Assembly (NCBI GenBank): GCA_044892525.1
Contig: CM097887.1
Span: 121,808,397-121,872,396, forward strand
Source of the DNA: Schmidtea polychroa
Taxonomy: Eukaryota
Length of the DNA stretch: 64,000 nt
Direction of reading: 5' to 3'
In this document: piece by piece, positions 12,837-45,897 of the stretch
Numbering within the stretch: position 1 is the stretch's first letter
How the letters are laid out: each line of letters starts with the position of its first letter
Notes under the pieces: model-generated
The model's input: the letters and a program-made list of their open reading frames with translations, nothing else
The model's database searches: none
Told to the model about the DNA's origin: nothing
Program-made: the position numbers and the translations under genes

Positions 12837-14263
12837 TTTTATCTAACTTTTAAAATCTTCATTCGGTATTTATAATCATTATTTTGAGTTCAACTGGCTG
12901 AAAAATGAAAAAATTTTAAAATAATATTTTTGAAAGCCACAGGTGTGAGACAGAAGTGTCGAAAAGATAAATATTTAAAGATCAACTATCCTGCTCGAAA
13001 TATTTACATATTAATCAATTTTATCAAAATTATTTTTCTTGATAAAATAACTCAAAATTTATACATTAAAAATAATAATAATAATAATAAAAATAATAAT
13101 ATTCACCTTTTTATTCACTAGCTTCTTTTGACCAACTCTTTTCTTTTATATTTGATTTAATTCTATTTTCTTTTCGTAAGTATCTCCTAATTCTATATTT
13201 TCGTTTTCCCTAAACGTCCTATTCTGTCTTTTCCTTTTTCCTACTTTCGATTTCTTCGAATTACTAGCTGAGGCTAAAAGCCGGTTTGCTTTGATTTTCC
13301 CATTCCTTATATACTCTTCGAAATCGGAATGACAAATGGTTAAATCTAAAACGATTGGATCGCAGGTAAAAGCCAAAGGCAGTGGTACCATCAAGAAATT
13401 AATACAGGGCTTTACATAATAGTGTTAATCTGATGTGATGCAAAAAGAATTGGTGTTAGAGTACGTTCTTGTAAGCTAGGATGAACGCGTTGAATAGAAA
13501 TGGTGGATAGTGTAGTGGTTGAAGAGGTTAGGACTAGACCGTAATTCACAAATAGGGTGGTAATTGAATCTTTTCTTTCATAACTTTGTCGTGATTTATT
13601 TCCACGTACCCAGGGGTAGTCTAGCTAAATTTTCTTTTATAAGCATTGAGTTTGGTTGAAATTCTGAAAACGGACAAGAAAGCCGACCAGCATGCTGACG
13701 AAAAATTACAATTCCGGGTCAACAAACTCAAGGCTCGGTGTCGGGAAATGAAGTGCACCTGGTTCCACCCAAAAGACATGAGAAAACACATGCGCCAGAT
13801 TCAAAAATTTGCAGACGCATAGCGCCAAAAATCACACAGAATTGAGGGTATTATGAATTCAAATGCGACGGTAGGAGAACCATCCAGATATTTCTTCTCT
13901 TAAAAACCAAAAATGTTCTAAATATTTTTATGCAATTGATAAGTTTAGTAAAATAATTTTAAATAAATGCTATTAATACTTAATATATCTCCTTCTTCTC
14001 ATCAGAAATATTTCAATAACAGTTCTCAAAAGTATTTTTCCTTTTCATTTTGTAATTATACCTCCCGTAGTGTCATAATACATATTGCAAATTTTACCAC
14101 GTATATTTTTGCTCATCTTGTTTGTTAGTATAAATACTCATATTCACTACATCATTCGACATATCAGTCAATTTACATTCATTCATACTACAATCCTTAG
14201 CATTATTCATACATTTATCAACAGCCTCTTTCAACGTTAACAATAAAAACCGTTTTGAATAGC

Positions 14264-16064: not shown

Positions 16065-16070
16065 TATTAT

Positions 16071-16754
16071 TATTCATCTTTACGCTTAATTAATAAGTCA
16101 AGAAATGCTATGGATGAATCCTTCCCAGTTTCACATGTGAATATAATGTTCTTATGCAATCCATTCATGTAATGCAAAAACAGTTTCACGTTCCTTATTT
16201 TTAAATATCAAAAAAATATCATCAACATACCTTTTATACACAATTGGTTTTTCATATTGAAAAGAAGCAATTTTCTTTTCAAAATATGCCAAAAATATTG
16301 ACAATGCCATTGTTGGTGCTAAGGGCGAACCCATAGCCACTCATCAATTTGTTCATACCATTCATTACTAAGAAAATTAACTTTGGAAGTTGCAAACTCT
16401 AAAAGCTTCTAAATGCACTTCCATCACACATTTTATGCGCATCAATATTTATATTTCATAATTCACAACATAAATCGATTGTTTCTTTCAACGGGACATT
16501 AGTAAATAAACTACATACATCAAACTAAACCATATACTCATTAACATTATTTTTATTCAATTGTCCTATATTGTATAGGCTTTACATAATCTAAATTGAA
16601 AACTGTCCTTACATTCAAACTCAGATTTTATTAAGGGTTTTAATAATCCATCCAAATACTTCGCTATTTTATACTGAGCGGTTCCAACCATAGTTAAAAC
16701 AGGTCTCACGGGAACTCCGTCTTTATGAACTTTGGGAAGTCCGTATAATTTATA
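16071..16754 (-). mobile_element. Penelope-like RT relic, unit copy
   Basis: 8862-9545 shifted by +7209. Confidence 0.85.
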
Positions 16755-19041
16755 AGTTAGTCATCCGTCGTGAATGTAGGTATCCTGATGATGACAGTGA
16801 TGCTATCGAAATATATAGTGAAAAAGATGTATTAATGATAAATTCCAGTTTTAATGATTTTATTTGAGTGATTATTTAAGAAATTTGATTGTCTAAGGCA
16901 ATTAAATTCATTAGTAATATTTTAGAGTTAATGCCAGCTGGTTTTAAGAAATATTTAAATGAATTTCTATCATTTTTTGTGAATTTCTTTGTTGATTCAA
17001 AGAGTATTTTAAATAATGAGGTTTTAATGGTTATTCTAAGATAAATTTAATTAATTTCTTGATAATTTGTTCTTAAAGTTTTTAATTTGAGTTTTTACAA
17101 TAATCATGTGATTTATTTAATTTTGATGATAGTATGAACTTTGTAATGATATTAAATTTGACAAAATGATTTTTTCAATAATTATATTTTCCATGAACTT
17201 TTCAATTTCTCATTAGGCAGTTTACACATTAATGAACTATTAAATATTGAAAATTTTAAACTAAGAAACCAGTTAATTTTATCAAGGATAGATGATGGTA
17301 AAATATTTGAAATTTACATGAAAATTATTGTAGGATATACTGAAATTTCTGATTTGGTTTGAAAGATTTATAATTGCTAGAAAATTATTGAGGGAATCTG
17401 TGAAAATTATGATCAATCAATGAGAAAATATAATCTCTAGTTAGGTATTTGATGGTAAATTGTGTTAAAACTTTGTTGATTTGTAGAAAATATTGGTTTT
17501 AGTGAATTTGTTCTTTGAAAGTCTTATAATACGGATTTAGCTACTCAATTATTTCAATGGAAGACTGGTGGATGTCAGTAATGTGTAGTTAAAGAAAATT
17601 CATAATTTTTGATGAATTTTTAAAATTTTCAATCGGTTTTAAGAGGATTTAATCGACTGAATTGATATTTTAAAAAGGGATGTGGCAGGTGGGAGAAATC
17701 TTTACGGAAGTTTAGGAATATAGTTGGTTGGATATATATATTTAAAGGTGGTAGAATTATAATTATTTAGTGTGACTTTTAGATCTCTAGAAGACAGCGA
17801 TTTTATTAATATTTGAGATCTTTAGAGATAATTGGAATTGATATCAATTGATATATTAAATTATTTTACTTTTATTTAAAATGTAATAGACAAGTATTGA
17901 TTGTAAGGGTATCGATGACAAAATTTGTGAAATATTAACTTAAAAGAGTAATTTTGGGTGTCGTAACAACAAATGAAAGTTAATCTTTATTGAAAGAAAT
18001 TTCTGATTTTTCAAATGGCTTTTAATTATATTTCTGGAGATTGAATCAGCTGAATATCAGTTAAGAATAGAATATGGCCATTTGAAGGAATATAGAGATT
18101 TTATCGAATGGATAAATTTAATCTTTCGATGAATCAAGGTGGTTAATTGTGAATTATACAAAATCAATTGAATAAATTCTTTAATTGATTTTATTTTAAA
18201 TTTCAAGGAGTGACTTTCCGTAAGAACAAAGATTTAATTATTTTTAATTATAACTAATTTTATAAATTAATTCTATGAATTTATTAATTTACTTAATTTT
18301 GAATGTTTTATAATGAAATATTTGTGATATTTAGATAATAGGAATTAAGATCAAAATTAATGGGAGTAGAGTAGAGATAGTCATTTAAAGGGATTTTAAT
18401 GAATTATATTGGTTTGATATTAAAATGGGAATATATAATACTTTACGGATACTTATCGCTAAAATATCAATCTTTAAAGATGGATAGATATTTTATGGAA
18501 ATTTGATGATTTTTAGATGATTATAGAGAGTAATCAATCATGCGCTTGTATATAACAAATGGTAGAATGGTGTAATTTAGAGTAATTAATTTAGAAAACT
18601 TGTTCATTCAATGTTATCATTCGTGGGCTTATGTCAGTCCTTTTAAAAATTTAATGATAATTATTTAGATATTTCTAAGGTAAATTATTGACTTTGATAA
18701 TTGTAAATGAGTTTTTACTGAATTTCCTAAAATATTTAAGCAATCTGTAAATCAAATTGAGTATACATGTGATAAGCTTACTTATAAGTAATTTTTAAAT
18801 TAATTTATTCAATCTAAATAAATTATTTACTAGATTTTATTAGAAAAATCTAAAAATACATGATAGCTCGACGTGATCTCCAGGCGTACTAAGTTTTTAT
18901 GTAATGGTATATCATTGTGTAATATCTATTGAAATATAATAAAAAGGAGAAACTAATAATAATTGTTGAGTATATCATTAAAACAAATAATTTATTAAGA
19001 ATTTATTTCTTTGGCAACTTTTATAATACATCAAAACTATT

Positions 19042-20045
19042 TCACTTTTTTTCTATTACGAACACTATTACTTCTTCTTCTCCTTCTTCTTCTTCTAAAT
19101 AATAAATAAATGAGATATTAATTGCAAATAATATCTTACCTCCATAAACCTCAAGTTCTGCAAAATTTAGTATTTCATTTTTCGTTTGTCTTACACGAAT
19201 TTTATCAGCTAATTTTCTGTCACAATTGAGGTTATAAACCGGCTTGTTTTCCGTGATTATTCCACATTGTCCAGTAATCTCATCCTCTTTGTTAAGCAAT
19301 TCAATAACTGTTCCAACCATTCTTTGTGAACAACAATCTTTCCTGTTATGCAAAACTAAAGATTCAATATTGAATGTCCTTCCTAGGAATACTGTCCAAG
19401 ACGAGTTTAGTGCCTGAGTTGTGTGGCAAAAATTATCGAACTTCTCGTCATTACAAAATGCTGCTGGATATTGATTATGGCTTTGCTTATTTAAGATAGA
19501 ATTCTTTCCTTTGGCAATGTTGATCGTAGCTTTTGCTGCATTTTTATATGAAGCACCTTAAATGCAGTAAAGACCTTTTATAATTTTAAATATTTCTAAC
19601 CTTTTACTTCTAGTTCTCGAAAATTGAGATATTCGTTTCTGGTATGTCTAATTCGAATCATGTTTCCGATTTTATTTCCACATGAAAATACATACGAAGG
19701 TTTACTTTCAGTGATTTGTCCACATTGATGAATGAGTTTATTGGTCTTGGACAACAATTCTACTACTGCTCCAACAATCCTATCTTGACAACAATCAACT
19801 CTATTGTGTAGAACAACAGAATCGATGGTGTATGAACCCTCTAGATCAACCATCCAATATGGATTTCTTTCTGAATTTGTATGGCAGAAATTGGATAAAT
19901 TGCCATCAACACAGAAACTTGAAGGATATTTATTTCCATAATTGCTGCTTTGAGCTGTTGGTTTACCTTTAGAGATAATGTCTTGTGAACGTACGAATTC
20001 ACACAAAATCAACATAGACCATGACACAAGTATTAATTTAATCAT
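19042..20045 (-). CDS. Tandem F-type lectin, copy 3
   Basis: Exons 19601-20045, 19140-19556, 19042-19094; same motifs as copy 4. Confidence 0.88.
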
Positions 20046-20354
20046 TTTTATCTAACTTTTAAAATCTTCATTCGGTATTTATAATCATTATTTTGAGTTC
20101 AACTGGCTGAAAAATGAAAAAATTTTAAAATAATATTTTTGAAAGCCACAGGTGTGAGACAGAAGTGTCGAAAAGATAAATATTTAAAGATCAACTATCC
20201 TGCTCGAAATATTTACATATTAATCAATTTTATCAAAATTATTTTTCTTGATAAAATAACTCAAAATTTATACATTAAAAATAATAATAATAATAATAAA
20301 AATAATAATATTCACCTTTTTATTCACTAGCTTCTTTTGACCAACTCTTTTCTT

Positions 20355-20612
20355 TTATATTTGATTTAATTCTATTTTCTTTTCGTAAGTATCTCCTAAT
20401 TCTATATTTTCGTTTTCCCTAAACGTCCTATTCTGTCTTTTCCTTTTTCCTACTTTCGATTTCTTCGAATTACTAGCTGAGGCTAAAAGCCGGTTTGCTT
20501 TGATTTTCCCATTCCTTATATACTCTTCGAAATCGGAATGACAAATGGTTATTGTCGAGTCAATCTCTCTCTTGACATTCGACTCCACATATCTGTATCG
20601 GTTGTCACCCAT
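20355..20612 (-). other. Unidentified 85-aa basic ORF (repeat family 'A'); truncated at the A|B junction in the other units
   Basis: MGDNRYRYVESNVKREIDSTITICHSDFEEYIRNGKIK...KRKRQ; a diverged homolog at ~40830-41130 reads MDDSRSKHVGENVKRKIGSAITICHPDFKEYISKGKIR. Confidence 0.5.
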
Positions 20613-20881
20613 GTGAATATAATGTTCTTATGCAATCCATTCATATAATGCAAAAACGGTTTAACGTTCCTTATTTTTAAATATCAAAAAAATATCATCA
20701 ACATACCTTTTATACACAATTGGTTTTTCATATTGAAAAGAAGCAATTTTCTTTTCAAAATATGCCAAAAATATTGACATTATTGTTGGTGCTAAGGGCG
20801 AACGCATAGCCACTCCATCAATTTGTTCATACCATTCATTACTAAGAAAATTAACTTTGGAAGTTGCAAACTCTAAAAGCT
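20610..20881 (-). mobile_element. Diverged Penelope-like RT fragment in the palindrome centre
   Basis: Paralog of 8924-9198 with several substitutions and indels; keeps an open frame (QIDGVAMRSPLAPTIMSIF..YVDDIF) where the unit copy is frameshifted. Confidence 0.85.
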
Positions 20882-21242
20882 GCCTACAAAAATAATATAT
20901 AGCCAGGAGTTCTTTTCTTGTAATACAATAGCCTCTTTCGTGGTCATTCATCGCATGTGAATCATATGCGATAACTTGCTCATATCCCATGTCATCCTCC
21001 TGTGATAAGACTGCGCCGATTGTATCGAAACTTGCGTCCGTATCCAGTATGAATTCTTTCTTAAAATCCGGAAATACCAAAATCGGTGCGGTTATTAATG
21101 TCGACTTCATATTCTTCATATTCACTTACTTTAATTAATTAAATTGAATATTTATATAAAAATTTAAGCAATCTGATATATACAATTTAAATGTTTATTA
21201 GCAATGTTCCGTTTTAACTTAAACGTGAATTCTACCCTTTCA
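20881..21242 (-). mobile_element. Truncated copy of the deleted gypsy element at the inversion junction
   Basis: LTR remnant plus the RNase H N-half, broken after YYFCR. Confidence 0.85.
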
Positions 21243-22599
21243 GCTATTCAAAACGGTTTTTATTGTTAACGTTGAAAGAGGCTGTTGATAAATGTATGAA
21301 TAATGCTAAGGATTGTAGTATGAATGAATGTAAATTGACTGATATGTCGAATGATGTAGTGAATATGAGTATTTATACTAACAAACAAGATGAGCAAAAA
21401 TATACGTGGTAAAATTTGCAATATGTATTATGACACTACGGGAGGTATAATTACAAAATGAAAAGGAAAAATACTTTTGAGAACTGTTATTGAAATATTT
21501 CTGATGAGAAGAAGGAGATATATTAAGTATTAATAGCATTTATTTAAAATTATTTTACTAAACTTATCAATTGCATAAAAATATTTAGAACATTTTTGGT
21601 TTTTAAGAGAAGAAATATCTGGATGGTTCTCCTACCGTCGCATTTGAATTCATAATACCCTCAATTCTGTGTGATTTTTGGCGCTATGCGTCTGCAAATT
21701 TTTGAATCTGGCGCATGTGTTTTCTCATGTCTTCTGGGTGGAACCAGGTGCACTTCATTTCCCGACACCGAGCCTTGAGTTTGTTGACCCGGAATTGTAA
21801 TTTTTCGTCAGCATGCTGGTCGGCTTTCTTGTCCGTTTTCAGAATTTCAACCAAACTCAATGCTTATAAAAGAAAATTTAGCTAGACTACCCCTGGGTAC
21901 GTGGAAATAAATCACGACAAAGTTATGAAAGAAAAGATTCAATTACCACCCTATTTGTGAATTACGGTCTAGTCCTAACCTCTTCAACCACTACACTATC
22001 CACCATTTCTATTCAACGCGTTCATCCTAGCTTACAAGAACGTACTCTAACACCAATTCTTTTTGCATCACATCAGATTAACACTATTATGTAAAGCCCT
22101 GTATTAATTTCTTGATGGTACCACTGCCTTTGGCTTTTACCTGCGATCCAATCGTTTTAGATTTAACCATTTGTCATTCCGATTTCGAAGAGTATATAAG
22201 GAATGGGAAAATCAAAGCAAACCGGCTTTTAGCCTCAGCTAGTAATTCGAAGAAATCGAAAGTAGGAAAAAGGAAAAGACAGAATAGGACGTTTAGGGAA
22301 AACGAAAATATAGAATTAGGAGATACTTACGAAAAGAAAATAGAATTAAATCAAATATAAAAGAAAAGAGTTGGTCAAAAGAAGCTAGTGAATAAAAAGG
22401 TGAATATTATTATTTTTATTATTATTATTATTATTTTTAATGTATAAATTTTGAGTTATTTTATCAAGAAAAATAATTTTGATAAAATTGATTAATATGT
22501 AAATATTTCGAGCAGGATAGTTGATCTTTAAATATTTATCTTTTCGACACTTCTGTCTCACACCTGTGGCTTTCAAAAATATTATTTTAAAATTTTTTC

Positions 22600-22669
22600 A
22601 TTTTTCAGCCAGTTGAACTCAAAATAATGATTATAAATACCGAATGAAGATTTTAAAAGTTAGATAAAA
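22600..22669 (+). promoter_or_regulatory. Putative lectin core promoter (TATA-like)
   Basis: TATAAATA at 22632, 38 nt before the ATG; the ~65 bp before the ATG are retained unchanged in the otherwise diverged paralog at ~39720-39783. Confidence 0.35.
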
Positions 22670-23673
22670 ATGATTAAATTAATACTTGTGTCATGGTCTA
22701 TGTTGATTTTGTGTGAATTCGTACGTTCACAAGACATTATCTCTAAAGGTAAACCAACAGCTCAAAGCAGCAATTATGGAAATAAATATCCTTCAAGTTT
22801 CTGTGTTGATGGCAATTTATCCAATTTCTGCCATACAAATTCAGAAAGAAATCCATATTGGATGGTTGATCTAGAGGGTTCATACACCATCGATTCTGTT
22901 GTTCTACACAATAGAGTTGATTGTTGTCAAGATAGGATTGTTGGAGCAGTAGTAGAATTGTTGTCCAAGACCAATAAACTCATTCATCAATGTGGACAAA
23001 TCACTGAAAGTAAACCTTCGTATGTATTTTCATGTGGAAATAAAATCGGAAACATGATTCGAATTAGACATACCAGAAACGAATATCTCAATTTTCGAGA
23101 ACTAGAAGTAAAAGGTTAGAAATATTTAAAATTATAAAAGGTCTTTACTGCATTTAAGGTGCTTCATATAAAAATGCAGCAAAAGCTACGATCAACATTG
23201 CCAAAGGAAAGAATTCTATCTTAAATAAGCAAAGCCATAATCAATATCCAGCAGCATTTTGTAATGACGAGAAGTTCGATAATTTTTGCCACACAACTCA
23301 GGCACTAAACTCGTCTTGGACAGTATTCCTAGGAAGGACATTCAATATTGAATCTTTAGTTTTGCATAACAGGAAAGATTGTTGTTCACAAAGAATGGTT
23401 GGAACAGTTATTGAATTGCTTAACAAAGAGGATGAGATTACTGGACAATGTGGAATAATCACGGAAAACAAGCCGGTTTATAACCTCAATTGTGACAGAA
23501 AATTAGCTGATAAAATTCGTGTAAGACAAACGAAAAATGAAATACTAAATTTTGCAGAACTTGAGGTTTATGGAGGTAAGATATTATTTGCAATTAATAT
23601 CTCATTTATTTATTATTTAGAAGAAGAAGAAGGAGAAGAAGAAGTAATAGTGTTCGTAATAGAAAAAAAGTGA
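22670..23673 (+). CDS. Tandem F-type lectin, copy 4
   Basis: Exons 22670-23114, 23159-23575, 23621-23673 total 915 nt with no internal stop. Domain 1: FCVDGN..FCHT..HNRVDCCQDR..ELEV. Domain 2: FCNDEK..FCHT..HNRKDCCSQR..ELEV. Tail EEEEGEEEVIVFVIEKK*. Confidence 0.9.
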
Positions 23674-23805
23674 AATAGTTTTGATGTATTATAAAAGTTG
23701 CCAAAGAAATAAATTCTTAATAAATTATTTGTTTTAATGATATACTCAACAATTATTATTAGTTTCTCCTTTTTATTATATTTCAATAGATATTACACAA
23801 TGATA

Positions 23806-25906
23806 TACCATTACATAAAAACTTAGTACGCCTGGAGATCACGTCGAGCTATCATGTATTTTTAGATTTTTCTAATAAAATCTAGTAAATAATTTATTTA
23901 GATTGAATAAATTAATTTAAAAATTACTTATAAGTAAGCTTATCACATGTATACTCAATTTGATTTACAGATTGCTTAAATATTTTAGGAAATTCAGTAA
24001 AAACTCATTTACAATTATCAAAGTCAATAATTTACCTTAGAAATATCTAAATAATTATCATTAAATTTTTAAAAGGACTGACATAAGCCCACGAATGATA
24101 ACATTGAATGAACAAGTTTTCTAAATTAATTACTCTAAATTACACCATTCTACCATTTGTTATATACAAGCGCATGATTGATTACTCTCTATAATCATCT
24201 AAAAATCATCAAATTTCCATAAAATATCTATCCATCTTTAAAGATTGATATTTTAGCGATAAGTATCCGTAAAGTATTATATATTCCCATTTTAATATCA
24301 AACCAATATAATTCATTAAAATCCCTTTAAATGACTATCTCTACTCTACTCCCATTAATTTTGATCTTAATTCCTATTATCTAAATATCACAAATATTTC
24401 ATTATAAAACATTCAAAATTAAGTAAATTAATAAATTCATAGAATTAATTTATAAAATTAGTTATAATTAAAAATAATTAAATCTTTGTTCTTACGGAAA
24501 GTCACTCCTTGAAATTTAAAATAAAATCAATTAAAGAATTTATTCAATTGATTTTGTATAATTCACAATTAACCACCTTGATTCATCGAAAGATTAAATT
24601 TATCCATTCGATAAAATCTCTATATTCCTTCAAATGGCCATATTCTATTCTTAACTGATATTCAGCTGATTCAATCTCCAGAAATATAATTAAAAGCCAT
24701 TTGAAAAATCAGAAATTTCTTTCAATAAAGATTAACTTTCATTTGTTGTTACGACACCCAAAATTACTCTTTTAAGTTAATATTTCACAAATTTTGTCAT
24801 CGATACCCTTACAATCAATACTTGTCTATTACATTTTAAATAAAAGTAAAATAATTTAATATATCAATTGATATCAATTCCAATTATCTCTAAAGATCTC
24901 AAATATTAATAAAATCGCTGTCTTCTAGAGATCTAAAAGTCACACTAAATAATTATAATTCTACCACCTTTAAATATATATATCCAACCAACTATATTCC
25001 TAAACTTCCGTAAAGATTTCTCCCACCTGCCACATCCCTTTTTAAAATATCAATTCAGTCGATTAAATCCTCTTAAAACCGATTGAAAATTTTAAAAATT
25101 CATCAAAAATTATGAATTTTCTTTAACTACACATTACTGACATCCACCAGTCTTCCATTGAAATAATTGAGTAGCTAAATCCGTATTATAAGACTTTCAA
25201 AGAACAAATTCACTAAAACCAATATTTTCTACAAATCAACAAAGTTTTAACACAATTTACCATCAAATACCTAACTAGAGATTATATTTTCTCATTGATT
25301 GATCATAATTTTCACAGATTCCCTCAATAATTTTCTAGCAATTATAAATCTTTCAAACCAAATCAGAAATTTCAGTATATCCTACAATAATTTTCATGTA
25401 AATTTCAAATATTTTACCATCATCTATCCTTGATAAAATTAACTGGTTTCTTAGTTTAAAATTTTCAATATTTAATAGTTCATTAATGTGTAAACTGCCT
25501 AATGAGAAATTGAAAAGTTCATGGAAAATATAATTATTGAAAAAATCATTTTGTCAAATTTAATATCATTACAAAGTTCATACTATCATCAAAATTAAAT
25601 AAATCACATGATTATTGTAAAAACTCAAATTAAAAACTTTAAGAGCAAATTATCAAGAAATTAATTAAATTTATCTTAGAATAACCATTAAAACCTCATT
25701 ATTTAAAATACTCTTTGAATCAACAAAGAAATTCACAAAAAATGATAGAAATTCATTTAAATATTTCTTAAAACCAGCTGGCATTAACTCTAAAATATTA
25801 CTAATGAATTTAATTGCCTTAGACAATCAAATTTCTTAAATAATCACTCAAATAAAATCATTAAAACTGGAATTTATCATTAATACATCTTTTTCACTAT
25901 ATATTT
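23806..25906 (+). pseudogene. Possible decayed leucine-rich-repeat gene (also 31015-33115 +; 9600-11700 and 16809-18909 -; partial at 4076-4490)
   Basis: Stop-riddled frames contain LRR-like segments: VFLDFSNKI (23856), IRIIRLSKNKFTK (25179), IINLSNQIRNFSISYNNF (25341). Pattern recognition only, in very AT-rich DNA. Confidence 0.35.
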
Positions 25907-25960
25907 CGATAGCATCACTGTCATCATCAGGATACCTACATTCACGACGGATGACTAACT

Positions 25961-26644
25961 TATAAATTATACGGACTTCCCAAAGTTCATAAAGACGGAG
26001 TTCCCGTGAGACCTGTTTTAACTATGGTTGGAACCGCTCAGTATAAAATAGCGAAGTATTTGGATGGATTATTAAAACCCTTAATAAAATCTGAGTTTGA
26101 ATGTAAGGACAGTTTTCAATTTAGATTATGTAAAGCCTATACAATATAGGACAATTGAATAAAAATAATGTTAATGAGTATATGGTTTAGTTTGATGTAT
26201 GTAGTTTATTTACTAATGTCCCGTTGAAAGAAACAATCGATTTATGTTGTGAATTATGAAATATAAATATTGATGCGCATAAAATGTGTGATGGAAGTGC
26301 ATTTAGAAGCTTTTAGAGTTTGCAACTTCCAAAGTTAATTTTCTTAGTAATGAATGGTATGAACAAATTGATGAGTGGCTATGGGTTCGCCCTTAGCACC
26401 AACAATGGCATTGTCAATATTTTTGGCATATTTTGAAAAGAAAATTGCTTCTTTTCAATATGAAAAACCAATTGTGTATAAAAGGTATGTTGATGATATT
26501 TTTTTGATATTTAAAAATAAGGAACGTGAAACTGTTTTTGCATTACATGAATGGATTGCATAAGAACATTATATTCACATGTGAAACTGGGAAGGATTCA
26601 TCCATAGCATTTCTTGACTTATTAATTAAGCGTAAAGATGAATA
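25961..26644 (+). mobile_element. Penelope-like RT relic, unit copy
   Basis: Mirror of 16071-16754. Confidence 0.85.
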
Positions 26645-26650
26645 ATAATA

Positions 26651-28451
26651 AATTTAAATGTTTATTAGCAATGTTCCGTTTTAACTTAAACGTGAATTCT
26701 ATTCTTTCATCCCCCTTCTTTGAAAATTCTTTAATCTTTTCAATATTCCTGATTAAAGATTTCCCACTTTTATCTCTCAGCATATAACTACGATCGTGTA
26801 TTCGTTTTGTTACCATGTATGGTCCTTCATATCTATCTTGATCCTTATTTCGTATTTCTCGTTTGATTAACACTTTGTCTCCAACATCCAACCTCCTTGC
26901 AGTTGTTGTTTCATCATTTCGTCTTTTACATTCAATTTTCAATGCGATATCGTTCCTGTTGATTCTACTATCATTTTACCATTTCGATCTATCAATTTTC
27001 CTACCAAAAATAATTTCAGCTGGACTTACTCCTGTTTTGTTTTGGATTGTCGCGTTGAGTGTATATTATGGGATAAGGTCTGCCCAGTCTTTTGTATTTC
27101 CGTCTTTCAGCGATGCATTAATAAAATCTCTTATTGTCCGGAATTGTCTTTCGATTATACCATTCGTATTATGATGATATGGGCTCGAATACACTATCAC
27201 GAACCCTGCATTTTTGCTTATATTCTTTATGCTATTAGCTTCGAATGTTTTCCCGCAATCTACATGTAGTTCTTTTGGTGCTTCAAATTTTTGAATCCAG
27301 TTGTTTAAAAATATCTTTCCAACTGTCTCTTCATCCTGTTTATTGATTGCTGTTAACGAGATGTATTTGCTGTAATGGTCGATTATTGCGCAAATGTATC
27401 TTTTCCTGTTAAATGTTTCTTTCATTGGGCCACAGATATCCATATATATTTTCTCAAAAGGTTCGGATGCTTCAAGTACTTTTGGTTTCTCTTTCATCTT
27501 TGTAGTTACAACTTTAACTTTTTGGAACGATTCGCAATTTCATATTGTCGTTTTTTCTTCCTTTATTAGATCTCTCATATCAAAATTGTTTTGTATGTAT
27601 TTGATAACTTTGTCAACTCTAGCATGTCACAATAATAGATTTGTTTTGTTAATCATTTCTCTTCTTTTGCTCTCTGGTATCCATATTCTTTTATCTTTGG
27701 TATAAATAATGTTATCCTCTATTATAAACCTTCCACTTGTTTGCGTTCTTATTTTATTTTTAATCTCCTCTATTTCATCACTATTCATTTGCCATTCCTC
27801 TCCTTTGTCTTCAGTCATTATATATAACAACCTGGTTTTCATTCTTCCCATTTTAGGATTATCGTGCTCCATAAGGCATTGTACACATGTGCCACACGTT
27901 TTCCTCGATAACATGTCTGCTTTCGTATGTAGTGTACCCTTTCTAAATTCTATTTTTATATCAAGGCTACTTAAATAGTTTATCCAGGTCTGGAATTGAG
28001 CTGTAATTGGCTTTTTCGTTAGCATAAATGTTATTGCTTTATGATCTGTACGTAGTATAAATCTTTTCCCATATAAATAGTGATTGAAATGCCTACAAAA
28101 ATAATATATAGCCAGGAGTTCTTGTCTTGTAATACAATAGCCTCTTTCGTGGTCATTCATCGCATGTGAATCATATGCGATAACTTGCTCATATCCCATG
28201 TCATCCTCCTGTGATAAGACTGCGCCGATTGTATCGAAACTTGCGTCCGTATCCAGTATGAATTCTTTCTTAAAATCCGGAAATACCAAAATCGGTGCGG
28301 TTATTAATGTCGACTTCATATTCTTCATATTCACTTACTTTAATTAATTAAATTGAATATTTATATAAAAATTTAAGCAATCTGATATATACAATTTAAA
28401 TGTTTATTAGCAATGTTCCGTTTTAACTTAAACGTGAATTCTACCCTTTCA
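26651..28451 (-). mobile_element. Deleted gypsy element, unit copy
   Basis: Mirror of 14264-16064. Confidence 0.88.
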
Positions 28452-29878
28452 GCTATTCAAAACGGTTTTTATTGTTAACGTTGAAAGAGGCTGTTGATAA
28501 ATGTATGAATAATGCTAAGGATTGTAGTATGAATGAATGTAAATTGACTGATATGTCGAATGATGTAGTGAATATGAGTATTTATACTAACAAACAAGAT
28601 GAGCAAAAATATACGTGGTAAAATTTGCAATATGTATTATGACACTACGGGAGGTATAATTACAAAATGAAAAGGAAAAATACTTTTGAGAACTGTTATT
28701 GAAATATTTCTGATGAGAAGAAGGAGATATATTAAGTATTAATAGCATTTATTTAAAATTATTTTACTAAACTTATCAATTGCATAAAAATATTTAGAAC
28801 ATTTTTGGTTTTTAAGAGAAGAAATATCTGGATGGTTCTCCTACCGTCGCATTTGAATTCATAATACCCTCAATTCTGTGTGATTTTTGGCGCTATGCGT
28901 CTGCAAATTTTTGAATCTGGCGCATGTGTTTTCTCATGTCTTCTGGGTGGAACCAGGTGCACTTCATTTCCCGACACCGAGCCTTGAGTTTGTTGACCCG
29001 GAATTGTAATTTTTCGTCAGCATGCTGGTCGGCTTTCTTGTCCGTTTTCAGAATTTCAACCAAACTCAATGCTTATAAAAGAAAATTTAGCTAGACTACC
29101 CCTGGGTACGTGGAAATAAATCACGACAAAGTTATGAAAGAAAAGATTCAATTACCACCCTATTTGTGAATTACGGTCTAGTCCTAACCTCTTCAACCAC
29201 TACACTATCCACCATTTCTATTCAACGCGTTCATCCTAGCTTACAAGAACGTACTCTAACACCAATTCTTTTTGCATCACATCAGATTAACACTATTATG
29301 TAAAGCCCTGTATTAATTTCTTGATGGTACCACTGCCTTTGGCTTTTACCTGCGATCCAATCGTTTTAGATTTAACCATTTGTCATTCCGATTTCGAAGA
29401 GTATATAAGGAATGGGAAAATCAAAGCAAACCGGCTTTTAGCCTCAGCTAGTAATTCGAAGAAATCGAAAGTAGGAAAAAGGAAAAGACAGAATAGGACG
29501 TTTAGGGAAAACGAAAATATAGAATTAGGAGATACTTACGAAAAGAAAATAGAATTAAATCAAATATAAAAGAAAAGAGTTGGTCAAAAGAAGCTAGTGA
29601 ATAAAAAGGTGAATATTATTATTTTTATTATTATTATTATTATTTTTAATGTATAAATTTTGAGTTATTTTATCAAGAAAAATAATTTTGATAAAATTGA
29701 TTAATATGTAAATATTTCGAGCAGGATAGTTGATCTTTAAATATTTATCTTTTCGACACTTCTGTCTCACACCTGTGGCTTTCAAAAATATTATTTTAAA
29801 ATTTTTTCATTTTTCAGCCAGTTGAACTCAAAATAATGATTATAAATACCGAATGAAGATTTTAAAAGTTAGATAAAA

Positions 29879-30882
29879 ATGATTAAATTAATACTTGTGT
29901 CATGGTCTATGTTGATTTTGTGTGAATTCGTACGTTCACAAGACATTATCTCTAAAGGTAAACCAACAGCTCAAAGCAGCAATTATGGAAATAAATATCC
30001 TTCAAGTTTCTGTGTTGATGGCAATTTATCCAATTTCTGCCATACAAATTCAGAAAGAAATCCATATTGGATGGTTGATCTAGAGGGTTCATACACCATC
30101 GATTCTGTTGTTCTACACAATAGAGTTGATTGTTGTCAAGATAGGATTGTTGGAGCAGTAGTAGAATTGTTGTCCAAGACCAATAAACTCATTCATCAAT
30201 GTGGACAAATCACTGAAAGTAAACCTTCGTATGTATTTTCATGTGGAAATAAAATCGGAAACATGATTCGAATTAGACATACCAGAAACGAATATCTCAA
30301 TTTTCGAGAACTAGAAGTAAAAGGTTAGAAATATTTAAAATTATAAAAGGTCTTTACTGCATTTAAGGTGCTTCATATAAAAATGCAGCAAAAGCTACGA
30401 TCAACATTGCCAAAGGAAAGAATTCTATCTTAAATAAGCAAAGCCATAATCAATATCCAGCAGCATTTTGTAATGACGAGAAGTTCGATAATTTTTGCCA
30501 CACAACTCAGGCACTAAACTCGTCTTGGACAGTATTCCTAGGAAGGACATTCAATATTGAATCTTTAGTTTTGCATAACAGGAAAGATTGTTGTTCACAA
30601 AGAATGGTTGGAACAGTTATTGAATTGCTTAACAAAGAGGATGAGATTACTGGACAATGTGGAATAATCACGGAAAACAAGCCGGTTTATAACCTCAATT
30701 GTGACAGAAAATTAGCTGATAAAATTCGTGTAAGACAAACGAAAAATGAAATACTAAATTTTGCAGAACTTGAGGTTTATGGAGGTAAGATATTATTTGC
30801 AATTAATATCTCATTTATTTATTATTTAGAAGAAGAAGAAGGAGAAGAAGAAGTAATAGTGTTCGTAATAGAAAAAAAGTGA
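29879..30882 (+). CDS. Tandem F-type lectin, copy 5
   Basis: Exons 29879-30323, 30368-30784, 30830-30882; same motifs as copy 4. Confidence 0.88.
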
Positions 30883-33169
30883 AATAGTTTTGATGTATTA
30901 TAAAAGTTGCCAAAGAAATAAATTCTTAATAAATTATTTGTTTTAATGATATACTCAACAATTATTATTAGTTTCTCCTTTTTATTATATTTCAATAGAT
31001 ATTACACAATGATATACCATTACATAAAAACTTAGTACGCCTGGAGATCACGTCGAGCTATCATGTATTTTTAGATTTTTCTAATAAAATCTAGTAAATA
31101 ATTTATTTAGATTGAATAAATTAATTTAAAAATTACTTATAAGTAAGCTTATCACATGTATACTCAATTTGATTTACAGATTGCTTAAATATTTTAGGAA
31201 ATTCAGTAAAAACTCATTTACAATTATCAAAGTCAATAATTTACCTTAGAAATATCTAAATAATTATCATTAAATTTTTAAAAGGACTGACATAAGCCCA
31301 CGAATGATAACATTGAATGAACAAGTTTTCTAAATTAATTACTCTAAATTACACCATTCTACCATTTGTTATATACAAGCGCATGATTGATTACTCTCTA
31401 TAATCATCTAAAAATCATCAAATTTCCATAAAATATCTATCCATCTTTAAAGATTGATATTTTAGCGATAAGTATCCGTAAAGTATTATATATTCCCATT
31501 TTAATATCAAACCAATATAATTCATTAAAATCCCTTTAAATGACTATCTCTACTCTACTCCCATTAATTTTGATCTTAATTCCTATTATCTAAATATCAC
31601 AAATATTTCATTATAAAACATTCAAAATTAAGTAAATTAATAAATTCATAGAATTAATTTATAAAATTAGTTATAATTAAAAATAATTAAATCTTTGTTC
31701 TTACGGAAAGTCACTCCTTGAAATTTAAAATAAAATCAATTAAAGAATTTATTCAATTGATTTTGTATAATTCACAATTAACCACCTTGATTCATCGAAA
31801 GATTAAATTTATCCATTCGATAAAATCTCTATATTCCTTCAAATGGCCATATTCTATTCTTAACTGATATTCAGCTGATTCAATCTCCAGAAATATAATT
31901 AAAAGCCATTTGAAAAATCAGAAATTTCTTTCAATAAAGATTAACTTTCATTTGTTGTTACGACACCCAAAATTACTCTTTTAAGTTAATATTTCACAAA
32001 TTTTGTCATCGATACCCTTACAATCAATACTTGTCTATTACATTTTAAATAAAAGTAAAATAATTTAATATATCAATTGATATCAATTCCAATTATCTCT
32101 AAAGATCTCAAATATTAATAAAATCGCTGTCTTCTAGAGATCTAAAAGTCACACTAAATAATTATAATTCTACCACCTTTAAATATATATATCCAACCAA
32201 CTATATTCCTAAACTTCCGTAAAGATTTCTCCCACCTGCCACATCCCTTTTTAAAATATCAATTCAGTCGATTAAATCCTCTTAAAACCGATTGAAAATT
32301 TTAAAAATTCATCAAAAATTATGAATTTTCTTTAACTACACATTACTGACATCCACCAGTCTTCCATTGAAATAATTGAGTAGCTAAATCCGTATTATAA
32401 GACTTTCAAAGAACAAATTCACTAAAACCAATATTTTCTACAAATCAACAAAGTTTTAACACAATTTACCATCAAATACCTAACTAGAGATTATATTTTC
32501 TCATTGATTGATCATAATTTTCACAGATTCCCTCAATAATTTTCTAGCAATTATAAATCTTTCAAACCAAATCAGAAATTTCAGTATATCCTACAATAAT
32601 TTTCATGTAAATTTCAAATATTTTACCATCATCTATCCTTGATAAAATTAACTGGTTTCTTAGTTTAAAATTTTCAATATTTAATAGTTCATTAATGTGT
32701 AAACTGCCTAATGAGAAATTGAAAAGTTCATGGAAAATATAATTATTGAAAAAATCATTTTGTCAAATTTAATATCATTACAAAGTTCATACTATCATCA
32801 AAATTAAATAAATCACATGATTATTGTAAAAACTCAAATTAAAAACTTTAAGAGCAAATTATCAAGAAATTAATTAAATTTATCTTAGAATAACCATTAA
32901 AACCTCATTATTTAAAATACTCTTTGAATCAACAAAGAAATTCACAAAAAATGATAGAAATTCATTTAAATATTTCTTAAAACCAGCTGGCATTAACTCT
33001 AAAATATTACTAATGAATTTAATTGCCTTAGACAATCAAATTTCTTAAATAATCACTCAAATAAAATCATTAAAACTGGAATTTATCATTAATACATCTT
33101 TTTCACTATATATTTCGATAGCATCACTGTCATCATCAGGATACCTACATTCACGACGGATGACTAACT

Positions 33170-33853
33170 TATAAATTATACGGACTTCCCAAAGTTCATA
33201 AAGACGGAGTTCCCGTGAGACCTGTTTTAACTATGGTTGGAACCGCTCAGTATAAAATAGCGAAGTATTTGGATGGATTATTAAAACCCTTAATAAAATC
33301 TGAGTTTGAATGTAAGGACAGTTTTCAATTTAGATTATGTAAAGCCTATACAATATAGGACAATTGAATAAAAATAATGTTAATGAGTATATGGTTTAGT
33401 TTGATGTATGTAGTTTATTTACTAATGTCCCGTTGAAAGAAACAATCGATTTATGTTGTGAATTATGAAATATAAATATTGATGCGCATAAAATGTGTGA
33501 TGGAAGTGCATTTAGAAGCTTTTAGAGTTTGCAACTTCCAAAGTTAATTTTCTTAGTAATGAATGGTATGAACAAATTGATGAGTGGCTATGGGTTCGCC
33601 CTTAGCACCAACAATGGCATTGTCAATATTTTTGGCATATTTTGAAAAGAAAATTGCTTCTTTTCAATATGAAAAACCAATTGTGTATAAAAGGTATGTT
33701 GATGATATTTTTTTGATATTTAAAAATAAGGAACGTGAAACTGTTTTTGCATTACATGAATGGATTGCATAAGAACATTATATTCACATGTGAAACTGGG
33801 AAGGATTCATCCATAGCATTTCTTGACTTATTAATTAAGCGTAAAGATGAATA
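33170..33853 (+). mobile_element. Penelope-like RT relic, unit copy
   Basis: Mirror of 8862-9545. Confidence 0.85.
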
Positions 33854-33859
33854 ATAATA

Positions 33860-35660
33860 AATTTAAATGTTTATTAGCAATGTTCCGTTTTAACTTAAAC
33901 GTGAATTCTATTCTTTCATCCCCCTTCTTTGAAAATTCTTTAATCTTTTCAATATTCCTGATTAAAGATTTCCCACTTTTATCTCTCAGCATATAACTAC
34001 GATCGTGTATTCGTTTTGTTACCATGTATGGTCCTTCATATCTATCTTGATCCTTATTTCGTATTTCTCGTTTGATTAACACTTTGTCTCCAACATCCAA
34101 CCTCCTTGCAGTTGTTGTTTCATCATTTCGTCTTTTACATTCAATTTTCAATGCGATATCGTTCCTGTTGATTCTACTATCATTTTACCATTTCGATCTA
34201 TCAATTTTCCTACCAAAAATAATTTCAGCTGGACTTACTCCTGTTTTGTTTTGGATTGTCGCGTTGAGTGTATATTATGGGATAAGGTCTGCCCAGTCTT
34301 TTGTATTTCCGTCTTTCAGCGATGCATTAATAAAATCTCTTATTGTCCGGAATTGTCTTTCGATTATACCATTCGTATTATGATGATATGGGCTCGAATA
34401 CACTATCACTAACCCTGCATTTTTGCTTATATTCTTTATGCTATTAGCTTCGAATGTTTTCCCGCAATCTACATGTAGTTCTTTTGGTGCTTCAAATTTT
34501 TGAATCCAGTTGTTTAAAAATATCTTTCCAACTGTCTCTTCATCCTGTTTATTGATTGCTGTTAACGAGATGTATTTGCTGTAATGGTCGATTTTTGCGC
34601 AAATGTATCTTTTCCTGTTAAATGTTTCTTTCATTGGGCCACAGATATCCATATATATTTTCTCAAAAGGTTCGGATGCTTCAAGTACTTTTGGTTTCTC
34701 TTTCATCTTTGTAGTTACAACTTTAACTTTTTGGAACGATTCGCAATTTCATATTGTCGTTTTTTCTTCCTTTATTAGATCTCTCATATCAAAATTGTTT
34801 TGTATGTATTTGATAACTTTGTCAACTCTAGCATGTCACAATAATAGATTTGTTTTGTTAATCATTTCTCTTCTTTTGCTCTCTGGTATCCATATTCTTT
34901 TATCTTTGGTATAAATAATGTTATCCTCTATTATAAACCTTCCACTTGTTTGCGTTCTTATTTTATTTTTAATCTCCTCTATTTCATCACTATTCATTTG
35001 CCATTCCTCTCCTTTGTCTTCAGTCATTATATATAACAACCTGGTTTTCATTCTTCCCATTTTAGGATTATCGTGCTCCATAAGGCATTGTACACATGTG
35101 CCACACGTTTTCCTCGATAACATGTCTGCTTTCGTATGTAGTGTACCCTTTCTAAATTCTATTTTTATATCAAGGCTACTTAAATAGTTTATCCAGGTCT
35201 GGAATTGAGCTGTAATTGGCTTTTTCGTTAGCATAAATGTTATTGCTTTATGATCTGTACGTAGTATAAATCTTTTCCCATATAAATAGTGATTGAAATG
35301 CCTACAAAAATAATATATAGCCAGGAGTTCTTGTCTTGTAATACAATAGCCTCTTTCGTGGTCATTCATCGCATGTGAATCATATGCGATAACTTGCTCA
35401 TATCCCATGTCATCCTCCTGTGATAAGACTGCGCCGATTGTATCGAAACTTGCGTCCGTATCCAGTATGAATTCTTTCTTAAAATCCGGAAATACCAAAA
35501 TCGGTGCGGTTATTAATGTCGACTTCATATTCTTCATATTCACTTACTTTAATTAATTAAATTGAATATTTATATAAAAATTTAAGCAATCTGATATATA
35601 CAATTTAAATGTTTATTAGCAATGTTCCGTTTTAACTTAAACGTGAATTCTACCCTTTCA
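33860..35660 (-). mobile_element. Deleted gypsy element, unit copy
   Basis: Mirror of 7055-8855; carries two private SNPs in integrase. Confidence 0.88.
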
Positions 35661-37017
35661 GCTATTCAAAACGGTTTTTATTGTTAACGTTGAAAGAGGC
35701 TGTTGATAAATGTATGAATAATGCTAAGGATTGTAGTATGAATGAATGTAAATTGACTGATATGTCGAATGATGTAGTGAATATGAGTATTTATACTAAC
35801 AAACAAGATGAGCAAAAATATACGTGGTAAAATTTGCAATATGTATTATGACACTACGGGAGGTATAATTACAAAATGAAAAGGAAAAATACTTTTGAGA
35901 ACTGTTATTGAAATATTTCTGATGAGAAGAAGGAGATATATTAAGTATTAATAGCATTTATTTAAAATTATTTTACTAAACTTATCAATTGCATAAAAAT
36001 ATTTAGAACATTTTTGGTTTTTAAGAGAAGAAATATCTGGATGGTTCTCCTACCGTCGCATTTGAATTCATAATACCCTCAATTCTGTGTGATTTTTGGC
36101 GCTATGCGTCTGCAAATTTTTGAATCTGGCGCATGTGTTTTCTCATGTCTTCTGGGTGGAACCAGGTGCACTTCATTTCCCGACACCGAGCCTTGAGTTT
36201 GTTGACCCGGAATTGTAATTTTTCGTCAGCATGCTGGTCGGCTTTCTTGTCCGTTTTCAGAATTTCAACCAAACTCAATGCTTATAAAAGAAAATTTAGC
36301 TAGACTACCCCTGGGTACGTGGAAATAAATCACGACAAAGTTATGAAAGAAAAGATTCAATTACCACCCTATTTGTGAATTACGGTCTAGTCCTAACCTC
36401 TTCAACCACTACACTATCCACCATTTCTATTCAACGCGTTCATCCTAGCTTACAAGAACGTACTCTAACACCAATTCTTTTTGCATCACATCAGATTAAC
36501 ACTATTATGTAAAGCCCTGTATTAATTTCTTGATGGTACCACTGCCTTTGGCTTTTACCTGCGATCCAATCGTTTTAGATTTCGCTCTGAGAACTGGGAG
36601 TACCTATTTTGATTCTGCTCCCATTTGTCATCGACCAACAGCTGAAGTTCCTGTTCAATATATCGAATCATACCGTCTTCAATTTTTGCTCAAAGCGATT
36701 GAGCATGTCGTCGTCTCAACAGGGAACAGTTCCATCTTGAACGTCCCTCTCGGTCTGACATAGTCTCCGGATGTCACTCTGCAGGGAGTTGAATCAGGCT
36801 GATTTGGCGTGACTGAGACTGAGTTCTTGCTTCACTATTTTTCGCCCGAGGTTTTCCAATTATTTACAACTTATTTTTGGCGCAGATTGTCTATCAGCAC
36901 ATCAAGCTTTAATCGATTATAATTTGAAAAGAGTTTTAATTATTTAAATTAATTATTTAAGATTTTTTACAAGAATATATGGTCAAATATTTTGATAAAT
37001 CGATGGCCACGTGAAAT

Positions 37018-37640
37018 TTGGTTGTTGATAATAACCTGATGGGTTACTTCAACAAACCAGAATGTAGCGCTAAAATAACAACACAACACGAAATTGTTAT
37101 AAATGATATCGTCAGATCATTTCTAGCAAGGCGTTTATTTGTAGACAAATTTAAAGTTGCCAAAGATTGGTTTTACAAAATGGTAGACACTGGAAAATGT
37201 CGATTATCCAACTCTTCAATTTCTTCGCCATTAGTTGTAATAAATCGAAACGGAAAATACAGATTCTGCGGTGATTACAAAATTTTGGACACTGCGACCA
37301 TTCCTGGTAGATAAATAATTCCCAGAATCGACGATTTACTGCAAATTGTTCAAAATAAAAAATACTTTTCCACTATTGGTCTTGAGAAGGTGTATTTACA
37401 AATTCCAATGAACAAAAGTGACATTCCAAAAACAGCAATAACTACTCCGTTTGGTATGTATGAATTCCTTTACAAGCTATTTGGGTTACAAAATGCCCAA
37501 TCTGGCTTCAAAGAATAATTAATACAATATTACGAAATTTTACATTTTCAAGAGCATACTTGGATGATGTACGTAATGCGTCAGACACAGAAGAAGAGCA
37601 TAACAAGCATTTTAAATTAATCGCGAACAGAATTGAATAA
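37018..37640 (+). mobile_element. Ty3/gypsy RT relic (different family) between ~62-bp direct repeats
   Basis: SSPLVV..YRFCGDYK, IPRIDDLL, KYFSTI, QIPM..DIPKTAITTPFGMYEF, frameshifted YLDD; repeats at 36960-37022 and 37747-37810. Confidence 0.85.
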
Positions 37641-39783: not shown

Positions 39784-40140
39784 ATGATTAAATTAATACT
39801 TGTGTCATGGTCTATGTTGATTTTGTGTGAATTCGTATGTCCACAAGAGTCTTATCTCTAAAGGTAAACCAAAAGCTCAAAGCAGCAATTATCAAAATAA
39901 ATATCCTGGAATAATGTGGAAAAATGTGGAATAATCAAGGAAAACAAGCCGGTTTATAAACTCAATTGTGACAGAAAATTAGCTGATAAAATTCGTGGAA
40001 GACAAACGCAAAATCAAATACTAAATTATGCAGAACTTGAGGTTTATGGAGGTAAGATATTTATTATTTAGAAGAACAAGGAGAAGAAGAAGAAGAAGAA
40101 GAAGAAGAAGAAGAAGAAAAAGAAAAATTAGTGTTCGTAA
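39784..40140 (+). pseudogene. Internally deleted, diverged F-type lectin paralog
   Basis: Signal peptide MIKLILVSWSMLILCEFV with an early frameshift, joined directly to the C-half of domain 2 (CGIIKENKPVYKLNCDRKLADKI..AELEVYG); shortened intron 2; expanded (GAA)n. Confidence 0.85.

Positions 40141-45812: not shown

Positions 45813-45897
<85 letters not shown>

Follow-up and report, generated by a model that had tools for sequence, protein, structure and literature searches.

How did two blocks of the same repeat unit come to lie next to each other in opposite orientations, and can the event that founded them still be read? Self-comparison of the window, i.e., the whole stretch of 64,000 nucleotides analyzed here, identified a 7,209-bp unit that is repeated head-to-tail at 4076-20551 (2.29 copies) and lies reversed at 20881-36582 (2.18 copies). 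These results confirmed what had been predicted from the sequence, namely inverted blocks of one unit, a fusion of a repeat family A to a family B, and the ends of both blocks. The features of the locus are compiled in Table 1.

Table 1. Positions of the repeat units, flanks and genes in the window.
Feature	Positions	Strand	Basis
Left flank X with Gypsy-type pol fragment (RT, then RNase H; ~4079 down to 2333)	1-4075	-	tblastn, Pfam, ORFs
F1, partial unit (5155-7209)	4076-6133	+	self-comparison
F2, full 7,209-bp unit, last base is the shared A at 13342	6134-13342	+	self-comparison
F3, full unit, ends on junction base 20551	13343-20551	+	self-comparison
5'-truncated Gypsy pol of the unit (RNase H and integrase)	14381-16093	+	Pfam, tblastn
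Second F-type lectin domain within each unit, 49% identity to that of the intact ORF	19141-19518	-	sequence comparison
Intact F-type lectin ORF, 149 aa	19596-20045	-	Pfam, PDB match
Native continuation of family A past the duplication breakpoint, 61 nt	20552-20612	+	alignment with 41067-41127
C', distinct and older copy of unit 2792-3065 (96.7% identity), RT fragment with Penelope-like motifs	20610-20880	-	self-comparison, Pfam RVT_1
R1, partial unit (1-1283), reverse complement	20881-22163	-	self-comparison
R2, full unit, reverse orientation	22164-29372	-	self-comparison
R3, full unit reversed (29373-36581) plus shared A at 36582	29373-36582	-	self-comparison
Flank past unit position 1, presumed native B side	36583-36910	-	self-comparison
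Paralog of family A (73%) spanning the breakpoint position	40824-41127	+	alignment

Its first 1 kb aside, the unit combines two retroelement pieces, namely a truncated Gypsy pol and a Penelope-like RT fragment, with two F-type lectin genes and a portion of repeat A; the amplified material is thus transposon debris together with fucose-lectin genes. Rfam and tRNA scans returned nothing. The Gypsy pol is supported by Pfam matches to RT_RNaseH (5.5e-32) and rve (1.2e-13), and a word search with its RNase H ORF retrieved transposon proteins only, the best of them 71-81% identical on short ENA contigs and the named ones (spiders, mussel) ~50% identical. A tandem LTR-retrotransposon array of the type LTR-internal-LTR-internal was rejected, as self-comparison found only one internal direct repeat in the unit, of 59 nt, and the 5'-truncated Gypsy pol lacks RT, protease and gag. 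Helitrons have 5'-TC and 3'-CTRR termini, the latter after a hairpin, and insert between A and T. A multimer of such a rolling-circle transposon was likewise rejected, since the unit ends in ...AATGGTTA and not in CTRR, and family A homology crosses the unit end.

To define the founding event, the junction between consecutive units was compared with its two sides. The 23-mer GACAAATGGTT-A-AATCTAAAACG occurs exactly four times in the window, with zero occurrences expected, and its shared A falls on 6133, 13342, 22164 and 29373, solely at unit boundaries, where the fusion of A to B had been placed. Since these four occurrences lie on copies with differing substitutions, a chimeric-read artefact is ruled out for this junction. 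Over 40 nt each way the two sides are unrelated and have a single A in common, so that the head-to-tail copies are linked by one identical novel junction whose founding breakpoints lack extended homology. The 1-nt microhomology that had been noted is a real overlap but an uninformative one, as ~29% of random joins share one base (calculated from the base counts of the window). A search with the junction sequence gave no match among JGI metagenome contigs, which is uninformative for a eukaryote. A single non-homologous join thus gave rise to the head-to-tail duplication of a 7,209-bp chromosomal stretch, whose end, lying within repeat A, was linked to its start with an overlap of at most 1 nt. 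The junction comparison thereby supports the proposed origin from a single-copy B...A segment.

If the array arose in place, its outer ends should continue into source sequence. On the A side, the sequence after 20551 runs on as TTGTCGAG..., and the 61 nt past the junction are identical to the paralog at 41067-41127 at 43 of 61 positions without gaps, compared with a mean of 15.8 in the null distribution (sd 3.5, maximum 29; 9046 windows). The paralog crosses the junction point at the terminal copy only (aligned with 20304-20612), whereas against all four internal junctions the alignment ends at 41066; the downstream end is therefore uninterrupted source sequence. The window holds no second copy of 20552-20612. 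The claim that the forward array continues into un-rearranged A accordingly stands for these 61 nt but not for most of the 329-nt spacer, because the remainder, from 20610, is the copy C'.

On the other side, the sequence at 36582 reads, in unit orientation, ...CTCAGAGCG-A-AATCTAAAACG, and the reverse block terminates precisely at unit position 1. The chance that a random secondary break would land there is about 1/7209, and on the strength of this exact end the flank beyond 36582 is presumed to be native B. Sensitive blastn within the window revealed no second B copy spanning unit position 1, and 36583-36752 has no second copy in the window, while a Gypsy pol-like fragment at 36753-36910 is 76.6% identical to 2442-2595. 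The predicted stop of the inverted array at 36582 is thus exact, whereas its continuation into un-rearranged B is presumed from that exact stop; on the A side the continuation is shown by a paralog. The same distinction applies to the view that the source flanks have been retained on either side of the array.

Each block has a single native flank, that on the B side by presumption, and the partial units (R1 and F1) complement each other without overlap. The two "arrays" are therefore better read as a single array of five or more units that was split in two, with unit 1284-5154 (3.9 kb) absent between the halves. Both blocks do end at the same nucleotide of the unit, and 20551 and 36582 are real ends; however, this is not an independent coincidence, as two ends of one array share their end nucleotide after any tandem duplication.

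The copies themselves record how the array may have grown. They differ by substitutions or a microsatellite step only. F2 and F3 are identical, while F1 is 99.76% identical, with a 3-nt microsatellite indel, and carries private variants (unit 6954 T, 5740 T and +3 nt in a CTT run). The reverse full units R2 and R3 are 99.92-99.95% identical to F3, differ from each other at two sites and have 1249C, 2174T and 3728C in common. Fixed differences between forward and reverse units occur at unit 430, 2174 and 3728, and R1 has the R allele at unit 430 but is F-like at 1249. Arranged as R3-R2-R1/F1-F2-F3, the copies show a gradation of variants, and the variants common to neighboring copies favor stepwise unequal exchange, through which the initial duplicate would have grown to at least five copies.

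These variants also bear on the first of the two mechanisms that had been left open, in which a 7.2-kb extrachromosomal circle (A joined to B) is copied by rolling circle and the concatemer re-enters the genome. While a simple end-to-start join with 1 nt overlap and nearly identical copies would be expected from a circle as well, none of the features found favors it. Both blocks adjoin flanks that are native or, on the B side, presumed to be so, which leaves no sign of reinsertion, and homologous re-entry at the source locus would be indistinguishable from duplication in place. Moreover, the variants shared by R2 and R3 and the identity of F2 and F3 indicate stepwise copying of mutated units and not one burst, and neither block comprises a whole number of units, their limits being unrelated breakpoints. 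We consider a circular intermediate very unlikely and favor in-place duplication followed by unequal exchange.

The change of orientation was approached through the secondary junctions, of which there are exactly two, J1 (4075/4076) and J3 (20880/20881). J1 had been overlooked in the earlier reading. Each of them lies inside a retroelement reverse-transcriptase fragment, with an overlap of 0-1 nt (1 nt, T, at J3) and no N gap. At J1, the Gypsy pol of the left flank, assigned by tblastn with the homologues P0011 and P0099, is broken in the middle of its RT (Pfam RVT_1, 3.6e-12, 3774-3989, minus strand). At J3, C' is truncated, as the unit's own C extends beyond unit 3065 with more RT motifs; the missing remainder (the counterpart of unit 3066 onward) was found neither beside 4075 nor elsewhere in the window. 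Together, J1 and J3 suggest a rearrangement of the inversion type accompanied by losses, or perhaps a contig misjoin.

Three simple routes to this layout were rejected. A clean two-break inversion does not account for the missing continuation of C' or for the 3.9 kb absent between the halves, and because of these gaps we assume that sequence was lost at both breakpoints or that the event was more complex. Recombination between inverted transposon copies would not explain the flip, since neither J1 nor J3 joins homologous element positions. Finally, a forward half inserted at a site between 4075 and 20881 was discarded, as the Gypsy fragments on either side are non-contiguous (RNase H N-terminus versus RT residue ~33, tblastn).

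We propose that the array was later cut inside its middle unit and that the half with the A-side flank was reattached in the opposite direction, probably by end joining or template switching, with the loss of unit 1284-5154 at one breakpoint and of some sequence at the other. Cutting the array and reversing one half would leave one block with the A flank only and the other with the B flank only, both ending at a unit boundary. A single inversion is supported by there being only two secondary junctions and by the presence of each native flank just once in the window. The whole sequence of events, i.e., non-homologous tandem duplication, unequal exchange, and then a cut with inversion of one half, is in our judgment the probable history of the locus.

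A rival view has the structure built by one FoSTeS/MMBIR-type event, in which replication of the array and the A flank switched to 272 nt of a Penelope-like element and then to the opposite strand at unit 1283. A short filler between the two orientations and joins with 0-1 nt microhomology are typical of such events, and both are seen here. However, the filler is 96.7% and not 100% identical to its sole other copy in the window, neither flank is duplicated although inverted duplications of that kind normally duplicate material, and junction 4075/4076 is left unexplained. A single template-switching event is thus improbable, and we retain the cut and inverted half.

The misjoin hinted at by J1 and J3 would mean that the genome has a single direct array here and that the joins at 4075/4076 and 20880/20881 stem from the assembler or from chimeric reads. 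Near-identical 7-kb repeats are difficult to assemble, both odd junctions lie within dispersed retroelement sequence, and fold-back and chimeric long reads are known (PMC12870357, PMC6218980). Nevertheless, this would take two independent chimeric joins in 17 kb, at junctions free of N gaps, and false haplotype duplication was rejected because it would have doubled the flanks. Long-read artefacts of the fold-back or palindromic type (PMC12870357; Pacasus, PMC6218980) likewise have two long opposite arms close together, the second arm by definition mapping to the opposite strand no more than 200 bp from the first (PMC12870357). In our case the closest complementary point lies at a distance of 1.6-6.3 kb, with a spacer of at least 1,612 nt, and the turn is not at one point. 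In addition, the reverse block is not a mirror of the forward one but is shifted in phase, with three fixed differences and unrelated outer flanks, and the private variants of F1 are absent from R3. A fold-back artefact is therefore excluded, and an assembly error of any other kind appears unlikely, leaving the inverted half-array as our preferred reading.

The lectin ORF of 149 aa is intact in five identical copies, three on one strand (the one in Table 1, 5178-5627 and 12387-12836, all minus) and two on the other (22670-23119 and 29879-30328, plus). It has an N-terminal hydrophobic leader and belongs to the F-type lectin family according to Pfam (PF22633, 5.5e-15; PF00754, 1.4e-9) and to solved structures (PDB 3cqo, FBP32, 1.5e-16; 1k12, 9.3e-11). 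The fucose-binding pattern of F-type lectins is H-x26-R-x-D-x4-R/K. The ORF carries H-x26-R-x-D-x4-R from residue 55, which lines up with HT...NRGDCCPER of FBP32. Judging from the sequence, the product is a predicted secreted F-type lectin with putative fucose binding. A word search with the ORF gave no match, hence no close relatives by that search. The second lectin domain has no start codon in the exon that encodes it.

Since the copies differ by 0.03-0.08% only, one can still read the breakpoint of the founding event, the outer ends on both sides and the order of the later copies, which makes the locus a clean, datable example of gene cluster growth. The dose of the F-type lectin gene has been raised five-fold, which may matter for host innate immunity. 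For genome curation, J1 and J3 mark the spot where copy number and orientation need caution. One could go further and regard the locus as a genuine palindromic amplicon, very young and not yet stable, of a secreted lectin gene, in which 7.2-kb units were amplified, perhaps initially via a circle, and then inverted, the half-arrays homogenise separately and the spacer flips, so that copy number and orientation would be polymorphic, perhaps under selection for lectin dosage; we consider this combination a long shot.

Among known systems, the F-type lectins or fucolectins, such as eel agglutinin (1K12) and striped bass FBP32 (3CQO), resemble the 149-aa ORF in sequence and in the H...RxDxxxxR pattern, but the latter is single-domain and very short. 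The 7.2-kb end-to-start junction has the same topology as the circle junction of eccDNA and rolling-circle amplification; unlike in those systems, there is no sign of excision or reinsertion, the array is at its source locus and its variants speak for growth in steps. Two secondary junctions with 0-1 nt overlap and a single copy of each flank are also what inversions with breakpoint loss or complex end joining show, whereas the reciprocal ends here do not match, so that material would have been lost at both breakpoints. The closest likeness in overall structure is to young tandem segmental duplications, or gene amplification, that start from a non-homologous join and expand through unequal crossing-over, many clusters of immune and lectin genes being examples; these have the same head-to-tail copies, novel junction, source sequence at the outer ends (presumed on the B side here), most-alike neighbors and an amplified gene family member. 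Unlike in these, the array is broken within its middle unit, with one half reversed and 3.9 kb of that unit missing; even so, the locus is an ordinary, very young gene amplification.

Self-comparison of the window shows that the 7,209-bp repeat unit lies in a forward block (copies F1-F3) and a reverse block (copies R1-R3). The locus is an ordinary tandem segmental duplication of very young age that still sits between its source flanks and was later split with one half reversed. Unit numbers are non-integer in both blocks (2.29 forward and 2.18 reverse), so each has one native and one secondary end. Of the two flanks, A borders the forward block alone and B the reverse block alone, A and B being the repeat families fused at internal unit boundaries; neither flank sequence has a second copy in the window. 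The partial units R1 and F1 are complementary and do not overlap.

Positions of the blocks, unit contents and associated features (window coordinates unless marked as unit)
Feature	Position	Strand	Evidence or remark
Left flank (X)	1-4075
F1	4076-6133		unit 5155-7209
F2	6134-13342
F3	13343-20551
Family A continuation	20552-20612
C' (RT fragment copy between blocks)	20610-20880		96.7% copy of unit 2792-3065
R1	20881-22163		reverse complement of unit 1-1283
R2	22164-29372
R3	29373-36581
Shared A (junction base)	36582
Right flank	36583 onward
No assigned identity	unit 1-1040
Gypsy RNase H and integrase	unit ~1040-2750	+	Pfam, 5.5e-32 and 1.2e-13
Penelope-like RT fragment	unit 2792 to ~3500	-	motifs
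Two F-type lectin domains	unit ~5800-6176 and 6254-6703	-
Part of family A	unit 6962-7209		self-comparison
Family A-edge ORF	13146-13394	-
Family A-edge ORF	20355-20612	-
Family A-edge ORF	36530-36763	+
Family A-edge ORF	40966-41127	-
59-nt direct repeat, example	14264-14322 and 16006-16064

The copy variants form a gradient along R3-R2-R1/F1-F2-F3. F2 is identical to F3, R2 departs from R3 at two sites (unit 1988 and 2172), and three positions (unit 430, 2174 and 3728) separate the forward from the reverse copies. R2 and R3 carry C at unit 1249, where R1 has the forward allele, and three changes are private to F1, one being a step in a CTT run. All differences are substitutions or a microsatellite step, none is a homopolymer error, and full copies diverge by 0.03-0.08%. 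Most simply, the copies would once have formed one array of at least five units, in the order upstream B, R3, R2, a middle unit, F2, F3 and A flank, which would then have been cut within the middle unit and its A-flank half re-joined in reverse. That both arrays end at the same nucleotide, as originally predicted, was observed, but on this reading it follows automatically from their being the two ends of one tandem duplication.

The 23-mer spanning the A|B junction occurs exactly four times, at the predicted positions (none expected by chance), and the sequences either side of 20551 and 36582 also agree with the prediction. An A paralog at 40824-41127 aligns with 20304-20612, 61 nt beyond the breakpoint, whereas its alignment to the four internal junction copies ends at 41066. 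These 61 nt match the paralog at 43 ungapped positions, against 15/61 for the unit start and a null mean of 15.8 (sd 3.5, maximum 29, 9046 windows). Together these results bear out the originally predicted layout, and the A flank is native. Un-rearranged A extends for these 61 nt but not over most of the 329-nt spacer, of which 20610-20880 is C'. No second copy of the B side across unit position 1 was found within the window. The reverse block stops to the nucleotide at the unit boundary, where a secondary break would fall by chance in about 1 in 7,209 cases, a good indirect argument for a native B flank. As the overlap at the A|B join is at most 1 nt, and about 29% of random joins in this base composition would show the same, the join is only shown to be non-homologous.

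Family A may be the interior of an element of foldback or MITE-like type. The A paralog lies, together with a 17/34-nt tandem repeat (41271-41342), in a 578-nt core enclosed by a perfect inverted repeat of 115 nt (40694-40808 and 41387-41501), 808 nt in all; no obvious target-site duplication was found at this element. A short ORF, similar in both copies, has its ATG on the outer margin of family A (20612, and 41127 in the paralog) and no Pfam match. In the internal units an ORF running in from the B side takes the place of its first 20 codons.

The original prediction had offered a DNA circle with rolling-circle reinsertion or unequal exchange as the source of the repeats. Neighbouring copies have variants in common (1249C, 2174T and 3728C in R2 and R3; F2 = F3), so already mutated units were copied again, which favours unequal exchange in steps over a single rolling-circle burst. 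Both halves are anchored at the source locus, so nothing shows reinsertion, and a circular first step of the amplification, though conceivable, has no positive support. A Helitron was rejected, the unit ending in ...GGTTA and family A running through this end, as was an LTR-element array, given that the unit has no LTRs, an internal repeat of 59 nt only and a 5'-truncated Gypsy pol.

The reversal of one half was examined at the secondary ends. Exactly two new junctions were found, the number made by one inversion. At J3 (20880/20881) C' meets R1 with an overlap of 1 nt (T), and at J1 (4075/4076) unit position 5155 lies against the mid-RT domain of a minus-strand Gypsy copy. C' is a separate, older copy of the RT fragment also present in the unit, reading ...EQIDGVAMRSPLAPT...YVDDIF... 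on the minus strand; Pfam gave only a weak RVT_1 match, and from its motifs we take the fragment to be Penelope-like in both copies. The unit copy continues upstream with the motifs YGLPKVHKDGVPVRPV and FDVCSLFTNVP (unit 3066-3500, minus strand), indicating that C' is broken at J3. A 154-aa ORF (20661-21125, minus strand) is open through J3, fusing the Gypsy RNase H N-terminus of R1 to C', probably by chance.

A clean inversion does not fit: it would need 4075 to have adjoined the part that C' now lacks, and unit 1283 to have adjoined 5155. That part of C' was found nowhere in the window, and between the halves there is no unit 1284-5154, pointing to loss at both breakpoints or to a more complex event. 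Recombination between inverted transposon copies was rejected as the junctions are not at homologous positions. That the forward half had inserted into a Gypsy element was dismissed because the two Gypsy pieces are not contiguous. Template switching was likewise discarded, the filler being 96.7% rather than 100% identical to the other copy and no flank being duplicated.

Along with transposon debris, the duplication has multiplied an F-type lectin gene. Its 149-aa ORF at unit 6254-6703, with a hydrophobic leader and an H-x26-R-x-D-x4-R pattern, matches FBP32 (3cqo, 1.5e-16) and eel agglutinin (1k12, 9.3e-11), and the five copies are all intact and identical; no close relative emerged from a word search. 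The second domain, 49% identical to the first, lacks a start codon in its own exon. In a relic lectin gene at 39784-40050 (plus strand), residues 1-41, which match the unit's lectin 1 (86% and 76%), are joined to a C-terminal stretch matching lectin residues 105-149, whereas the DNA of the relic matches the unit's lectin-2 region (82.5%). Its make-up suggests that unequal exchange or a deletion produced it within an older part of the lectin cluster. Family A lies there on the other side of the lectin, in opposite relative orientation. In every unit a 59-nt direct repeat (unit 922-980 and 2664-2722, 96.6%) flanks most of the Gypsy fragment.

The window (29% G+C) has the character of nuclear DNA, rich in transposons, from an AT-rich eukaryote that is probably an animal, with no sign of human sequence. 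Its ORFs are short, and recognisable coding remnants are limited to Gypsy-type pol fragments, a second reverse-transcriptase family, hAT transposase pieces and F-type lectin domains. Among protein matches the best fall on transposon proteins from short ENA contigs (71-81% identity), named ones (spiders, mussel) reaching about 50%; tRNA and Rfam scans of the window gave no matches. hAT-like remnants lie at 52388-52870 (minus strand; weak Pfam match to the hAT dimerisation region) and 54947-55573 (plus strand), one abutting the N run at 52194-52344. Short direct repeats in the flanks occur at 828-989/1177-1339 (92.7%), 38981-39034/39190-39243 (100%) and 36963-37022/37751-37810 (98%), the last bracketing a plus-strand Gypsy RT N-terminal fragment (37018-37518). 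A long (TTA)36 microsatellite occupies 45798-45906, and shorter TAA/TAT runs lie just ahead of family A in each unit (e.g., 20276-20310).

The inverted layout needs read-level confirmation. A contig misjoin is an unlikely source of it, as two chimeric joins would have had to arise independently within 17 kb, both of them gap-free; the three N runs (42549, 52194 and 61123) are all distant from the arrays. False haplotype duplication was rejected, as it would duplicate the flanks, which are not duplicated. In fold-back read artefacts the second arm maps less than about 200 bp from the first on the opposite strand, usually symmetrically about the read midpoint (PMC12870357), and whole-genome amplification palindromes are similar (PMC6218980). 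In contrast, the closest complementary point here is 1.6-6.3 kb off, the outer flanks are unrelated, and the reverse block is not a mirror of the forward one, showing three fixed differences and lacking in R3 the private variants of F1.
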